Positions 31,583 to 62,737 of a DNA stretch of 64,000 nt are shown piece after piece; the stretch's first letter is position 1, and every line of letters starts with the position of its first letter. A program made the translations under genes and the position numbers. Location of the stretch: positions 136,772,001 to 136,836,000 of the forward strand of contig NC_082712.1 of assembly GCF_030144855.1 (NCBI RefSeq), given 5' to 3'. The notes beneath the pieces are model-generated. The model had not been told where the DNA came from. It saw nothing but the letters and a program-made list of their open reading frames with translations, and made no database searches. The stretch comes from Hypanus sabinus. Taxonomy: Eukaryota.

Positions 31583-31896
31583 TCAAAATGTTAAATGAAA
31601 CTTTTGTTCTATTCTTTTGCTTGTCTCTGAGTGAAATATCGCACATCTGACTTCCAAATTCCGATCAGATCGTTCTGGAGCAAATTCTATGCTGGTTGTT
31701 GAAGAAAAAAGACCACTTGCATTAATCTGAGGTTGACTATTATTCACAGGTCCTGTGAAGGGTTGTTCTCCTTTGAACCACTTCACTTCAATTTCCAGCG
31801 GCACATAATTGGTCAGTGAAACCGTGAAAGTAGCCATTTTGTTTTCCTCCAGATGTGTTGGGTTGCACTTGATTTCAGACACAGTGGGGAAATGAC
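31583..31896 (-). CDS. Gene B post-TM C1-like domain 6 (terminal coding exon)
   Basis: ctttaag|GTCATTTC; (G)HFPTVSEIKCNP...ATFTVSLTNYVP..IEVKWFK...SGLFSSTTSIEFAP...VRCAIFH...FHLTF*; B-strand Cys absent. Confidence 0.88.
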
Positions 31897-32499
31897 CTTA
31901 AAGTGGAACACAATATGCAAATATAGTCAGCCCCATTGACCAAAGCTGATTGTTCATCTCAAAATTCTGATAATTAAATTTTCCAAAGTTAAATGCAAGT
32001 TTAATGTAGAAATTTCAAATACTCAATCTTATACAGTAGACAAGATAGATTAGATAGATTAAAGCATCTGAGAAAACGATGTATCACATATATTCAAACA
32101 AACATTCAAAATGGCACCATTTAAAGGCTAAATAAATGTCAGCAGGCCTACATAAATCTTTAATCAGGGAGTAATATAGGAGTAGAAAGTGGAAACAACA
32201 AAAGTTATTAGATAGATATTTTCTAGAGTTTAATAAAAATTATACACTTTCAGGATTGGTGAATAAAAACATGAATTACTGAGCAGTTGGAAAAGACCTT
32301 AACAGTTCACATGGGAAACTAGGTTGGTTGTGCTTCTGACGAAAAGCCAATAACATGTGTTAAAAAACACAACTTTTACAATGTAGCATTGAGACGCCTT
32401 GAGCAACTCTTATTAGTGGTTCTAAATATCACATCTGGAACTTTGTTTCCAATGGCATTTACTGAGAGGAGTAAAAGTGGGTAATTGAATAAACTCCAA

Positions 32500-32830
32500 T
32501 CCTCAGAGTATTTGATCCTATTATACCCAGTAATCTCATAGATGAGAATTTATAAAAGGCAGCTAGGAGTTAACATATTGCTTTGGTTCTGGAGTGTGTA
32601 TAAGCCAGTTTTGCCAAAATAGCACTCTTCCACTTCCAAGTCCATTAGTAAATCAAATAGGTTTAAAAATGGTCCTATACATTTTTTAAAGTCCTAAAAT
32701 AGCTAAAATGTACTTTGTTCTGAAGACTACAATAATGTCCCATCTAATTCGTATGTTGGAGGGTTCAAAATTTGAAATGTTGAAAAACTAAGTGAAATAT
32801 GACACTGATTCAGTCACATGCTCAGCTTTT
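32500..32830 (-). pseudogene. Possible decayed C1-like exon
   Basis: FFNISNFEPSNIRIRW (compare CDISGYKPSNIYIKW) and FGKTGLYTL (compare LGKDGRYSY) in different frames; stops present; no splice sites found. Confidence 0.3.
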
Positions 32831-32836
32831 AACATG

Positions 32837-34075
32837 GATGGATGCCATTGTCACCACCCTCCACCTGGCCCTAATCCACTTGGACAAAAAAAGACACAGA
32901 TGTTAGGATGCTGTTCATAGACTTCAGTTCAGCATTCAACACAATCATCCCTCACAAACTGTTTAGAAAGCTGAGCTTACTGGGCCTGAACACCTCCCTC
33001 TGTAACTGGATCCTAGACTTCCTGACTGGGAGACCTCAGTAGGTCTGGATCGGCAGCAGCATCTCCAAAACCATCACACTGAGCACAGGGGCTCCCCAGG
33101 ATTGCGTGCTCAGTCCACTGCTGTTGCATTCTGCTGACCCACGACTGTGCTGCAACACACAGCTTGAACTATATCATCAAGTTCACTGATGATACGACCG
33201 TGGTGGGTCTCCTCAGCAAGAATGATGAGTCAGCTTACAGAGAGGAGGCCCAGCGGCTAACGGACTGGTGCAGAGCCAACAACATGTCTCTTAATGTGAA
33301 AAAAACAATAGAGATGATTGTTGACTTCAGGAGGGCACGGAGCGACCACTCCCCGCTGAGCATCTACGGCTCCTCGGTAGAGATCATAAAGAGCATCAAA
33401 TTTCTTGGTGTTCACCTGCCGGAGAATCTCACCTGGTCCCTCAACACCAGCTCCATAGCAAAGAAAGCCCAGCAGCGTCTCTACTTTCTGCGAAGGCTGA
33501 GGAAAGTCCATCTCCCACCCCCCCATCCTCATCACATTCTACAGGGGTTGTACTGAGAGCATCCTGAGCAACTGTATCACTGCCTTGTTCGGAAATTGCA
33601 TAATCTCGGATCGCAAGACCCTGCAGCACATAGTGAGATCTGCTGAGAAGATCATCAGGGTCTCTCTTCCCATCATCACGGACATTTACACTACACGCTG
33701 CATCCGCAAAGGAAACAGCATTATGAAGGACCCCATGCACCCCTCATACAATCTCTTCTCCCTCCTGCCGTCTGGGAAAAGCCTCCAAAGCATTCGGGCT
33801 CTCACGACCAGACTATGTAACAGTTTCTTCCCCCAAGCTATCAGACTCCTCAATACCCAGAGCCTGGACTGACACCTTGCCCTATTGTTCTGTTTATTAT
33901 TTATTGTAATGCCTGCACTGTTTTTGTGCACTTTATGCAGTCCTGTGTAGGTCTGTAGTCTAGTTTTTTGTACTGTGTCATGTAACACCATGGTCCTGAA
34001 AAAAGTTGTCTCATTTTTACTATGTACTGTACCAGCAGTTATAGTCGAAATGACAATAAAAGTGACTTGACTTGA
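32837..34075 (+). mobile_element. Rex1/Babar LINE, 5'-truncated
   Basis: [47 protein letters not shown]; gacttgacttga tail. Confidence 0.92.
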
Positions 34076-34124
34076 ATTGGTTAATTGAGTTATCGGATAA
34101 TCGGAGCAGCCATTTAGAGTCACA

Positions 34125-60440: not shown

Positions 60441-60853
60441 CATCCCCCACAATTAGTACCTTACAAGCTTTTTTTTTGTTATAAACTTCCAGTTTGAAGG
60501 TTTTTATTATTCTTTTGTGCTCCAAACATTTATACTAAAATGTCTTTTAATTTCTAGTGAAAACCTTATGATTAAAAAAGCTGCTAATAGAAGCATGAAA
60601 CTGCATTTGTAAATATTCCTTGGGTAAAGAAATCTGCCATGCTCATTTATTCATAATTCCAGATCTAGCAATCTGGTAGAATCTTAACTATCTTCTCAGT
60701 CCAGGGACAAATGGGGATGGTCAACATTATCATTAAGATCCACAACCCATGAGCAAAGTAATAAAGTCTCATAACACTTTAGCCTTCACTTTATGCCTGT
60801 ATTTTCTATTACAAACAAACTTAATGTGCACATAAAATAAACTCAACACTTAC

Positions 60854-61174
60854 CTGTTACACTCAGAGTGGTTTCCAACCTTTCACCATTACGAAGTGAT
60901 CTGTGTCTCACAAAACATACGTAAATATTAGCATTATCTTGGAGCGATGGCTGTAACCTCATACGACTAGAAACACTGTAGGTTCCATCATTATTTTTAA
61001 TTGGGGATCCTGTGCAGATATCCTTCAGAATCTTTTCTTCTCCACCTCTAGATTTCTTTAACCAGCTCATCTCAATTTTCAAGGGATAAAAACCGGTACT
61101 GTCACAGTTTACTGATTTTTCAGTACCATTCTCAATTGTGATGTTGGTTGAAGATAATGTCACAGTTGGTATGG
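60854..61174 (-). CDS. Gene B Ig C1-set exon (extracellular)
   Basis: ctttacag|CCATACCA...GTAACAG|gtaagt; 321 nt; VNCDSTGFYP..IEMSWLK...KNNDGTYSVSS...YVCFVRHRSL. Confidence 0.93.
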
Positions 61175-61904
61175 CTGTAAAGGTATAATAGATAATCATT
61201 TAATATCAAATACAATTTGCATCTATTGAGTCAAACAATTACTGCATGTGTTAAAATGTTCACAGTTGCAGATAGCCCTTCCTGATAATTAAAGTGATAA
61301 GATCTAAGTTAATCACGTCGCTACTCTCAGGACTCAAACTTGTGTGATTTTGCCATTCTGTAGTTTAATGCACAAAATACCAAACATGTAAATGGTAATA
61401 GGAAGTTGAGCATGAATATTAAACATCATCTTATCACTGGTCTGACCATCATCTTAAAACAGAGTACACCTGAGACAATCTCTTGAGCACCAGATTTCAA
61501 TATCTATTGACAGGTTTATTCCTTCCACATTCATGAATAGAGGTATTCATATAATTATGATAGAGCAAGACAAGATTTATTTTATTTGCAGTAGAGAAAG
61601 CATTTTATATCTTAGAAGCCCAGTGTCCATCTTGCAACAGCATTTCCAAAATCTCATTTTGGAGATAATCTGCAACTATATTAAGACATTTGTAAGTAAA
61701 ATAAATGGCAAAACACTGTTTGAAAATGTACCTTGTTAACAGAATTCTAATTATCAGCACAAAAAAAATCACAGGTCATCACCTTGTCCAGATGCTCTGT
61801 ACATCACCATATTATATTATAAATTTCACCACCAGTGTGAATATTTATTAATAATGTTCCAAAATTGCAACTATGGCAACACTTTGCTGATTTAGTTAAA
61901 GGAT

Positions 61905-62188
61905 TATAAAGATTAGCTTTATTTGTCACTTGTACATACATTGAAACATAGAGTGAAATGCATCAAATCAAATCAGCGAGGATTATGCTGGGCAGCCTGC
62001 AAGTGTCGCCACATTTCTGTGCCAATGTAGCATGCTTATAACTCACTGATCCTAATGCTAGTCTTAGAAATGTGGGAGGAAACTAGAGAGACCATACAAA
62101 CTCATTACAAACAGTGGTGGGATTTGAACCCTGATCATATAGCTAATCTTATAAGTGTTGCTCTAACTGCTATGCTAACATGCCGCCC
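61905..62188 (-). mobile_element. tRNA-derived SINE
   Basis: Minus strand gggcggcatgttagcatagcagtt (A-box-like) and ggttcaaatccc (B-box); LINE-like tail tgacaaataaagctaatcttt. Confidence 0.6.
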
Positions 62189-62380
62189 CAGCTATGTAAC
62201 CATAAATAAAACTCAGAACTTTTGAAATCGACTGTTACTTTAAATTTATAGGGGTATCATAAAAGTGCTTGCAATTACGTGCATAAATATTGGTGAATAC
62301 CTTCTTTGATCAAATATGCTGCAGCAGTAATTCGACAGTTTGCATAAGAAGGGGAAGAATTCATGCTTTATTATTTTTAC

Positions 62381-62737
62381 CTGAAACAGTCATGGAAGAT
62401 TTTCCTTCTCCATTGTCTGTGCCAATAAAAACAGAACAGATATAATCTCCTTCTTCATTAAATTGCACAAGTGGAAGAAAAAGAGAAGCAATTCCCTTCT
62501 TCAATTCGTTGTCAAATATTTCAGCTCCTTTTCTGTATGGTGTATGCTTTCCTCCACCGAACTGATATATTTCTTGTTTGTTAGAAGAGCCAGGTTTTTG
62601 AAAGTACCAATAAACTGCAATTCTTAAAAGGTCAATTTCATTGTCCTTGTAACCAGACACACGGCATTCAAGAAGAACATCTTTATTCACAATGGCTTCA
62701 ACAGTTCTTGAATTCATAGACACTATTAGGTCACATT
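62381..62737 (-). CDS. Gene B Ig V-set exon
   Basis: ttttacag|AATGTGAC...GTTTCAG|gtaaaa; 357 nt; LLECRV, VYWYF, KGIASLFLPLVQFNEEGDYICSV, a B7-H6-type V pattern. Confidence 0.93.

Follow-up and report, generated by a model that had tools for sequence, protein, structure and literature searches.

C1-set immunoglobulin (Ig) domains are a hallmark of antibodies, T-cell receptors, MHC molecules, and a few of their allies. We know of no C1-set domain that works in the cytosol; all those known to us are luminal or extracellular. In human B7-H6 (NCR3LG1; PDB 3pv6, 4zso, and 6yjp), an ectodomain made of a V-set and a C1-set domain is followed by a single transmembrane (TM) segment and by a short gag-like tail region with ITIM, SH2, and SH3 motifs. 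Other B7 members have C2-like membrane-proximal domains. Ig heavy chains are likewise built of C1 domains and are anchored or secreted depending on alternative RNA processing; their TM exons come 3' of every C exon, which keeps the C domains extracellular in both forms. Integrin beta4 is a type I protein whose long cytoplasmic tail, at a proven location, carries FnIII modules as a binding scaffold. Elasmobranchs also possess the non-rearranging genes UrIg and UrIg2 (PDB 9dmx), in which a single V exon precedes a string of C1-type exons; UrIg is secreted only, and the TM segment of UrIg2 is placed behind the last C domain (PMC12227049).

The stretch of Hypanus sabinus DNA analysed here (the window, 64 kb) contains LOC132397240 and the beginning of a tandem paralogue, and nothing else was found in it. 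RefSeq names the product, XP_059831698.1, "uncharacterized protein LOC132397240." A sequence-only reading had placed nine phase 1 exons on the minus strand, and inspection of splice sites and frame confirmed them at the coordinates below. All acceptors are AG behind a pyrimidine tract, all donors are GT, the listed lengths are all divisible by 3, and the joined exons give a single open frame of 950 codons. Its translation is identical, letter for letter, to residues 34-982 of XP_059831698.1, to the protein's end, and so the frame is not due to chance. The exons, with the Ig domains after the TM segment called D1 to D6, are as follows.

62737-62381, minus strand: V-set exon, 357 nt, phase 1-1, residues 34-151 of XP_059831698.1 (Pfam V-set, 6.7e-11)
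61174-60854, minus strand: C1-set exon, the membrane-proximal domain of the ectodomain, 321 nt (Pfam C1-set, 2.3e-11)
59329-59213, minus strand: TM exon, 117 nt, a symmetric phase 1-1 cassette ending ...YLRYFRK
54033-53614, minus strand: D1, the first Ig exon after the TM exon, 420 nt, C1-like (weak Pfam C1-set, 1.7e-3)
49472-49098, minus strand: D2, C1-set exon, 375 nt (Pfam C1-set)
46798-46487, minus strand: D3, C1-set exon, 312 nt (Pfam C1-set)
44057-43734, minus strand: D4, C1-set exon, 324 nt (Pfam C1-set)
38458-38147, minus strand: D5, C1-set exon, 312 nt (Pfam C1-set, 1.7e-10)
31896-31583, minus strand: D6, the final C1-set exon (Pfam C1-set), with the stop codon TGA at 31585-31583

The leader exon is not in the window but past its upper end (above 64000). 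At 62795-62738, immediately upstream of the V exon, an ATG with a hydrophobic stretch was considered as a leader and rejected, as it is intron and the RefSeq leader differs. The stop codon of D6 is located 1 nt ahead of a donor-like site, GTAAAT.

The resemblance of the V-C1 ectodomain to B7-H6 was upheld both by sequence and by predicted fold. Human B7-H6 was the best PDB match by phmmer for the V exon (1.1e-7) and for the C1 exon (8.6e-15), and in Foldseek comparisons the predicted V-C1 superposed on 4zso, 6yjp, and 3pv6 with TM-scores of 0.88-0.92 and rmsd values of 2.0-2.9 A at 30% identity. Pfam typed the membrane-proximal domain as C1-set (2.3e-11) rather than C2-set_2 (1e-6). The V exon ends ...GEGKSSMTVS, without a canonical FGxG J motif, and its best PDB matches by phmmer were B7-H6, B7-H3, and PD-L1, with UrIg2 absent among the matches listed. 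UrIg2 did appear among the sequence and fold matches. The gene differs from UrIg and UrIg2, whose exon string it resembles, in having a V domain nearer to B7-H6 than to UrIg2 and a TM segment between its first and second C1 domains. The rest of the type I layout is also present, with a hydrophobic leader in the RefSeq N terminus and a single TM segment behind the C domain.

The later six exons had been read as C1-like, and Pfam, sequence relatives in the PDB, and confident beta-sandwich models agree on the C1-set. Pfam C1-set scores for C1 and D2-D6 were above the cut-off (2e-7 to 2e-11), and that of D1 was below it. D1 carries an insert of ~24 residues (354-377) that is modelled with low confidence, the remainder being a confident beta-sandwich, and it is related to D2 (7.9e-10). 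In the AlphaFold model all eight Ig domains are confident (mean pLDDT, 83.5), and the domains of the array form sandwiches, each with a helix of 3-4 residues ahead of the F strand. Their PDB relatives are, overall, Ig constant domains, TCR C-beta, and SIRP. D3 best matched Ig light- and heavy-chain constant domains and SIRP (1.7e-12), and D4 best matched IgE C-epsilon-4 (2.7e-11), followed by UrIg2 and TCR C-beta; no match below 1e-5 was found for D5 among PDB sequences.

The post-TM coding sequence is thus all C1-set Ig by Pfam and AlphaFold, and a gag-like tail with ITIM, SH2, and SH3 motifs is absent from LOC132397240. Where human B7-H6 has that motif region, the stingray protein has six C1-set domains (~685 residues). 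We take the gag-like tail to be mammal specific, not family defining across vertebrates.

Homologues were expected to exist as uncharacterised proteins, and this is how we found them in RefSeq, in several vertebrate groups. With D2 as the query, 156 proteins were retrieved at E of ≤1e-3. The layout of V, C1, TM, and C1 array is conserved in amphibians and in non-teleost fishes, namely sharks, rays, chimaera, coelacanth, lungfish, reedfish, and sturgeon. Of 150 representative homologues, 92 have an internal hydrophobic segment that is preceded by one or more Ig domains and followed by two or more. A nurse shark protein of 1092 aa deposited as B7H6 (QTT61906.1), retrieved at an E value of 9e-181 with the sawfish orthologue as the query, shares the order V-C1-TM-D1-D2-D3-D4-D5-D6 and the TM-to-D1 junction with LOC132397240. 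It differs in having a seventh tail domain, and since its identity is only 30-46% per domain, we assign it to a paralogous lineage. Orthologues that stop after D6, as LOC132397240 does, were found in sawfish, Mobula, skates, and the elephant shark (LOC103174894). The locus belongs, as an intact gene, to the B7H6 (NCR3LG1) family, which is multigenic in cartilaginous fish. Its sequence is not new, being already in RefSeq, and the same architecture had already been deposited as shark B7H6. The sequence-only reading is borne out in its single-gene layout of V, C1, TM, and six C1 domains and overstated as to novelty. We found no description of Ig domains after the TM segment of B7H6 in the openly accessible papers that we searched.

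Conservation extends through the whole chain. Identity to Mobula is 79% for V, 83% for C1, and 90-97% for D3-D6 (D4, 93%; D6, 97%), and dN/dS against a skate mRNA is 0.16-0.54 across every exon, with D4, at 0.16, among the best conserved domains of the protein. By these sequence comparisons, the exon set is under purifying selection, and the array is conserved at least as well as V-C1. Domain order, cysteine pattern, and C terminus are conserved from chimaera to rays; the ...LTF ending of D6, for example, recurs in sawfish, in skate mRNAs, and elsewhere. In 25 aligned sequences, the canonical cysteine pair is kept almost without exception in D2 (25/25 and 24/25) and D3 (25/25 and 25/25), and in 18/25 in D1. 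D4 and D5 lack the second canonical cysteine and D6 lacks the first, a pattern that is family-wide, so that in three of the six tail domains one disulfide cysteine has been missing since before the chimaera/elasmobranch split. Loss of a canonical disulfide cysteine is unusual among extracellular C1-set domains. The lone core cysteines of D4-D6 are as conserved as the pairs of D2 and D3 in these 25 sequences; therefore, cysteine conservation needs no disulfide, and the redox reading of the pattern is ambiguous. Glycosylation motifs were equally uninformative: comparing N-X-S/T with the reversed motif in 25 orthologues and paralogues, no column was more than 40% conserved, even in the certainly extracellular V-C1, and densities were no different from those of the control.

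Besides a hydrophobic span, the TM exon encodes a short stalk and the basic flank RYFRK. The span is the only internal one in XP_059831698.1 and is modelled by AlphaFold as a helix (278-295). It is kept in all 25 aligned orthologues and paralogues, the basic flank is kept in most of them, and the exon has a dN/dS below 1 against the skate mRNA. The junction to D1 (...K|VPPK...) is widely conserved in the family. Logan mRNA contigs of 3.1-3.6 kb from skates contain equivalents of all nine exons, the TM exon among them, directly joined in a single frame; we fetched one from SRR5172151 and one from SRR13269326, whose protein cluster includes three others. We inspected these five skate contigs, which come from at least two runs, together with nurse shark B7H6 and elephant shark V9K7L7, both of which we take to be cDNA derived, and each of these directly transcript-derived sequences contained the TM exon. 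A search with the D1 exon alone for RNA-derived junction fragments in a collection of 5.8 billion proteins gave no matches. The objection that the six exons might belong to a separate transcript thus fails, as the TM exon is joined directly to the full array in spliced skate mRNAs, and likewise in nurse shark B7H6.

The refuting conditions named beforehand mostly fail. Against a further one, that transcripts skip the TM exon, stand the skate mRNAs and nurse shark B7H6, which include it. RefSeq also has TM-less isoforms in five species, Carcharodon (great white shark), Cetorhinus (basking shark), Bombina and Rana (frogs), and Microcaecilia (caecilian). In the four long/short pairs aligned (all but the basking shark), the sole difference is a TM segment of 34-39 residues. 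An exact-protein look-up for transcript support of Carcharodon isoform X2 found no record. These TM-skipped isoforms are predicted to encode a wholly secreted chain of eight Ig domains, and with such isoforms annotated in five species, the array probably passes through the secretory pathway as well.

We consider it somewhat probable that these features combine into a type I membrane B7H6 with a cytosolic C1 scaffold and a TM-cassette switch to a secreted form. The main product would be a type I membrane protein displaying V-C1 at the cell surface as a putative ligand, by homology, of NKp30-type receptors. Because all the Ig exons and the TM exon are phase 1-1, the array can be spliced in frame behind the TM exon, and with a signal peptide, one TM segment, and a conserved basic flank, standard topology rules would place the six C1-set domains (~685 residues) on the cytoplasmic side; this placement is only the default topological inference. 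There the array may act as a folded protein-binding scaffold, as the FnIII modules do in the integrin beta4 tail. The analogy is functional only, resting on a tail of beta-sandwich modules that are normally found in extracellular proteins; FnIII modules are not Ig C1-set domains, there is no sequence relationship, and the location of the LOC132397240 tail is predicted from topology rules. Skipping of the symmetric 117-nt TM exon would release the same chain as a soluble eight-Ig ligand or decoy. Ig heavy chains offer a parallel for such a choice between anchored and secreted forms; in LOC132397240 the TM segment is an internal cassette, and therefore its inclusion would put six C1 domains across the membrane.

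Alternatively, the array may work outside the cell, the secreted eight-Ig isoform being the relevant carrier of D1-D6, much like secreted shark UrIg, and the array being a tolerated passenger in the TM form, or the TM form a minor one. We regard this as unlikely. The almost invariant cysteine pairs of D2 and D3, and that of D1 in 18/25, would suit an oxidising compartment and count against cytosolic placement, whereas the lack of a disulfide in D4-D6 points the other way. That known C1-set domains are all luminal or extracellular and that D3 and D4 are closest in sequence to antibody constant domains, SIRP, and UrIg2 would fit a secreted array, as would the TM-less isoforms of five species and the four pairs differing by the TM segment only. 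These isoforms, however, are annotated gene models, while the TM exon is found in all of the inspected transcript-derived sequences (skates, nurse shark, and elephant shark), and its span and basic flank are conserved across lineages with dN/dS below 1.

A different route to an array made effectively in secreted form only would be a membrane form that ends soon after the TM exon by intronic polyadenylation, with the TM-to-D1 junction rarely used. Read-through of the TM donor adds 11 codons (...RKGKICFSTSET) before a stop, and AATAAA/ATTAAA hexamers are found at 59032, 58973, and 58937, 180-280 nt downstream of it, but five such hexamers occur within 2.5 kb, as expected by chance because the sequence is AT-rich. 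The junction is used in skate mRNAs and in the nurse shark and elephant shark proteins, and no short-tail model was found among the homologues. With its motifs at chance level in AT-rich DNA and no other support, we rejected this explanation as highly improbable. The idea that the six C1 exons form a separate gene or are decaying pseudo-exons, the nine-exon model being a prediction artefact, is already contradicted. The 5.2-kb intron between TM and D1 (59212-54034) could conceal a leader exon, and canonical cysteines are lost in D4-D6, but spliced mRNA contigs carry the nine exon equivalents in one frame, dN/dS is below 1 in every exon, domain order, cysteine pattern, and C terminus are conserved from chimaera to rays, and all domains are confident in the fold model.

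Returning to the membrane form with a cytosolic tail, we see about an even chance that these are the first C1-set domains known to work inside the cell, as a scaffold more than 400 million years old on an NK-cell ligand, with a TM cassette that switches the domains across or out of the membrane. Such a scaffold would have been kept in cartilaginous, lobe-finned, and basal ray-finned fishes and in amphibians, with a different tail in mammals. If the tail is truly cytosolic, C1-set domains would be put to an unusual use in it, and one that has apparently not been described. At least six C1-set domains behind a TM segment, under purifying selection from chimaeras to frogs, mean either that such domains are able to fold and work in the cytosol or that an unusual splice switch decides the destination of the chain. 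Either meaning bears on signalling through the NKp30-B7H6 axis in cold-blooded vertebrates and on the ancestral form of B7H6.

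The window gene, LOC132397240, has nine minus-strand exons in the window, encoding a V domain, a C1 domain, a transmembrane (TM) segment of 117 nt, and then six immunoglobulin (Ig) domains, here called D1 to D6. All exon lengths are divisible by three, acceptors consist of a pyrimidine tract and AG, donors are GT, and every exon is phase 1-1. When joined, the exons form a frame of 950 codons that is open throughout, and the translation is identical to residues 34 to 982 of the RefSeq protein XP_059831698.1 (P0169; "uncharacterized protein LOC132397240 [Hypanus sabinus]"). The nine phase-1 AG/GT exons proposed in the sequence-only reading were all found in place. 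Residues 1 to 33 of the RefSeq protein form a typical leader and are absent from the window, so the leader exon lies above coordinate 64000. At 62795-62738 (minus), an ATG and the hydrophobic stretch after it run in frame into V and resemble a signal peptide; they belong to the pyrimidine-rich tail of the intron, and the RefSeq leader differs.

Exons after the V and C1 exons of LOC132397240
59213-59329, minus: TM exon
54033, minus: start of D1
49472, minus: start of D2
46798, minus: start of D3
44057, minus: start of D4
38458, minus: start of D5
31896, minus: start of D6
31585-31583, minus: stop codon TGA of D6, the last exon

By Pfam, the V exon encodes a V-set domain, C1 and D2 to D6 encode C1-set domains above the curated cut-off, and D1 is a weak C1-set match. 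The TM exon product opens with a short stalk, continues with ~23 residues of hydrophobic span, and closes with RYFRK as its basic flank.

Other elements in the window
231-3616, minus: second B7H6-family paralogue, intact-looking, running off the low window end
~3616-3296, minus: V exon of the second paralogue
~1940-1659, minus: C1 exon of the second paralogue
~344-231, minus: TM exon of the second paralogue, ending ...FLYMRYMYK before GT
33164-33556, plus: intronic ORF of retroelement debris (Pfam reverse transcriptase, weak; ALKBH8_N, 2.7e-14)
35013-36166, minus; 47361-48129, minus; 56435-57101, plus: further intronic retroelement ORFs with LINE-like reverse-transcriptase motifs by eye; no Pfam match in those run
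~45700-45830: long (AC)n microsatellite in the D3-D4 intron, seen as THTHTH... and CVCVCV... in ORF translations

The presence of the second paralogue indicates that B7H6-family genes stand in tandem here, ~28 kb apart. Its TM segment resembles that of the Pristiophorus lineage represented by the homologous protein P0009.

The assignment of the ectodomain to B7-H6 was borne out at the family level. For both V (1.1e-7) and C1 (8.6e-15), the best solved relative by sequence was human NCR3LG1/B7-H6, and in an AlphaFold2 model of the whole protein, built from a 25-sequence alignment (mean pLDDT, 83.5), V-C1 superposed on B7-H6 crystal structures with TM-scores of 0.88 to 0.92 and an rmsd of 2.0 to 2.9 Å at 30% identity. 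A clear relative of identical domain order is the 1,092-residue nurse shark protein QTT61906.1, deposited as "natural killer cell cytotoxicity receptor 3 ligand (B7H6)," with 30 to 46% identity per domain. The window gene is, as judged from sequence, a paralogue and not an orthologue of this nurse shark gene.

The six exons after the TM segment were all modeled as confident beta-sandwiches (10-residue block pLDDT mostly 85 to 94), each with the short helix before the F strand that characterizes C1-set domains. Among solved structures, the nearest in sequence were Ig light- and heavy-chain constant domains and SIRP for D3, IgE C-epsilon-4, UrIg2, and TCR C-beta for D4, and an IgA1 constant domain for D6; D2 and D5 were more divergent. 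Within the array, D1 resembles D2, and D3 to D6 resemble one another. The only low-confidence parts of the model were the stalk preceding the TM helix (residues 278 to 295) and an insert of ~24 residues in D1 (residues 354 to 377; window ~53800-53870), which lies between confident strands and is poorly conserved in the family. This insert may serve as a flexible loop or carry a linear motif.

The uncharacterized homologues that had been guessed at do exist, from sharks and rays to amphibians. With D2 alone as query, a profile-free search over 1.84 billion representative proteins returned 156 proteins at E<=1e-3, 93 of them at E<=1e-10. We mapped the nine window pieces onto the best 150 of these 156 and located hydrophobic spans; in 92 of the 150, an internal hydrophobic segment was preceded by one or more Ig domains and followed by two or more, and dozens reproduced the order V-C1-TM-D1-D2-D3-D4-D5-D6. 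By these alignments, the layout is a family trait and no peculiarity of the window locus. Nor is it new to the databases: the gene is in RefSeq, and proteins with this layout became public years ago, one of them named B7H6 by specialists. NCR3LG1 is the annotation of some frog models. No teleost or amniote members were seen among the homologues whose names were looked up.

Family members
Rays and skates: Pristis, Mobula, Hemitrygon, Narcine, Rhinoraja, Amblyraja, Leucoraja
Sharks: Heptranchias, Pristiophorus, Rhincodon, Chiloscyllium, Hemiscyllium, Heterodontus, Scyliorhinus, Mustelus, Carcharodon, Cetorhinus, Ginglymostoma
Chimaera: Callorhinchus
Other fish: coelacanth, lungfish, reedfish, sturgeon
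Amphibians: one caecilian, one newt, several frogs

In transcripts of relatives, the TM exon is joined to the array. One protein cluster contained five skate proteins from Logan assemblies, on contigs of only 3.1 to 3.6 kb, two of which were inspected (runs SRR5172151 and SRR13269326). The SRR5172151 contig carries the nine exon equivalents back to back in one frame, with a start codon and signal peptide on the 5' side and a 3' untranslated region after them; because their window counterparts are spread over 31 kb, this contig is a spliced mRNA, and the six array exons do not form a separate transcript there. The TM span is present in all five skate proteins (four of full length, the fifth starting slightly later in V), and each ends in ...LTF after D6, like the window gene. 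In the nurse shark B7H6 entry and in elephant shark V9K7L7, the latter probably derived from the transcriptome of that species, D1 likewise follows the TM flank directly. If the TM donor is unused, the frame reads on for 11 codons to a stop, with AATAAA/ATTAAA within 180 to 280 nt (59032-59212, minus); a short-tailed membrane isoform made by such read-through is conceivable but very unlikely.

Codon comparison of the window exons with the skate mRNA gave dN/dS of 0.16 to 0.54 in every exon, including TM and D1 to D6, although these ratios are rough because synonymous divergence is high (0.4 to 1.2). Constraint on the tail is, by such comparisons, at least as strong as that on the ectodomain, and D4 and D6 are the best conserved domains.

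Percent identity to the window gene
Mobula: V 79, C1 83, TM 87, D1 80, D2 87, D3 91, D4 93, D5 90, D6 97
Sawfish (Pristis): V 78, C1 75, TM 68, D1 69, D2 69, D3 77, D4 86, D5 73, D6 84

Such an array could arise easily, since all Ig exons and the TM exon are phase 1-1 and downstream Ig exons therefore splice in frame. The D6 stop TGA lies one base before a GTAAAT donor-like site, exactly at the phase-1 donor position (31582-31585, minus), and paralogues in chimaera, coelacanth, and nurse shark have one or two extra Ig domains. Taken together, these features suggest that a longer ancestral gene was cut short by a stop to give the six-domain form; the ...LTF C terminus is common to sawfish and skates. 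Much longer post-TM arrays, of up to ~2,158 residues, occur in four homologues from frogs, Hypanus, and Mobula (P0004, P0015, P0184, and P0186). These hold runs of near-repeated D3-D4 or D4 units, which points to expansion of the tail by tandem exon duplication.

On which side of the membrane does the array lie? The sequence-only reading had placed it in the cytosol, and we still infer as much. Besides its signal peptide, the protein has just one hydrophobic span, an internal one, and 2 to 4 basic residues follow this span in the majority of the 25 family members aligned, so by the positive-inside rule the chain after the TM segment should stay cytosolic; the ...K|VPPK... junction is widely conserved. 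In addition, each of the last three domains is short of one canonical cysteine (the second in D4 and D5, the first in D6), a pattern shared with the chimaera and, to our knowledge, unusual among extracellular C1-set domains; two of these three, D4 and D6, are also the best conserved. A test of sequon conservation gave no signal, ectodomain included; a candidate glycosylation site in the tail is an NVT sequon where D5 starts.

The main rival reading takes the secreted form as the one in which the array does its work. Isoform models without the TM segment are listed by RefSeq for great white shark, basking shark, Bombina, Rana temporaria, and Microcaecilia, and four aligned pairs of long and short isoforms differ only in the 34 to 39 residues of the TM exon. 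Because the 117-nt TM cassette is symmetric, the frame survives its skipping, which would yield a fully secreted V-C1-D1...D6 chain. Both canonical cysteines are, moreover, near-invariant in D2 (25/25 and 24/25) and D3 (25/25 and 25/25), and D1 keeps both in 18/25. However, the lone core cysteines of D4 to D6 are as conserved as the D2 and D3 pairs, so conservation alone is no proof of disulfides. We consider this rival less likely. The D2 and D3 cysteine pairs and the TM-less isoforms at least complicate the cytosolic placement. Full-text searches of the open literature found no papers describing Ig domains behind the TM segment of B7H6, the likeliest papers lying outside it.

We lean toward a type I membrane ligand of the B7H6 family with a cytoplasmic tail of six C1-set domains, together with a splice switch by which the entire chain can be secreted as a soluble protein of eight Ig domains. 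Such a tail would provide a folded binding scaffold, for which the nearest functional precedent known to us is integrin beta4, with its FnIII-containing cytoplasmic tail.
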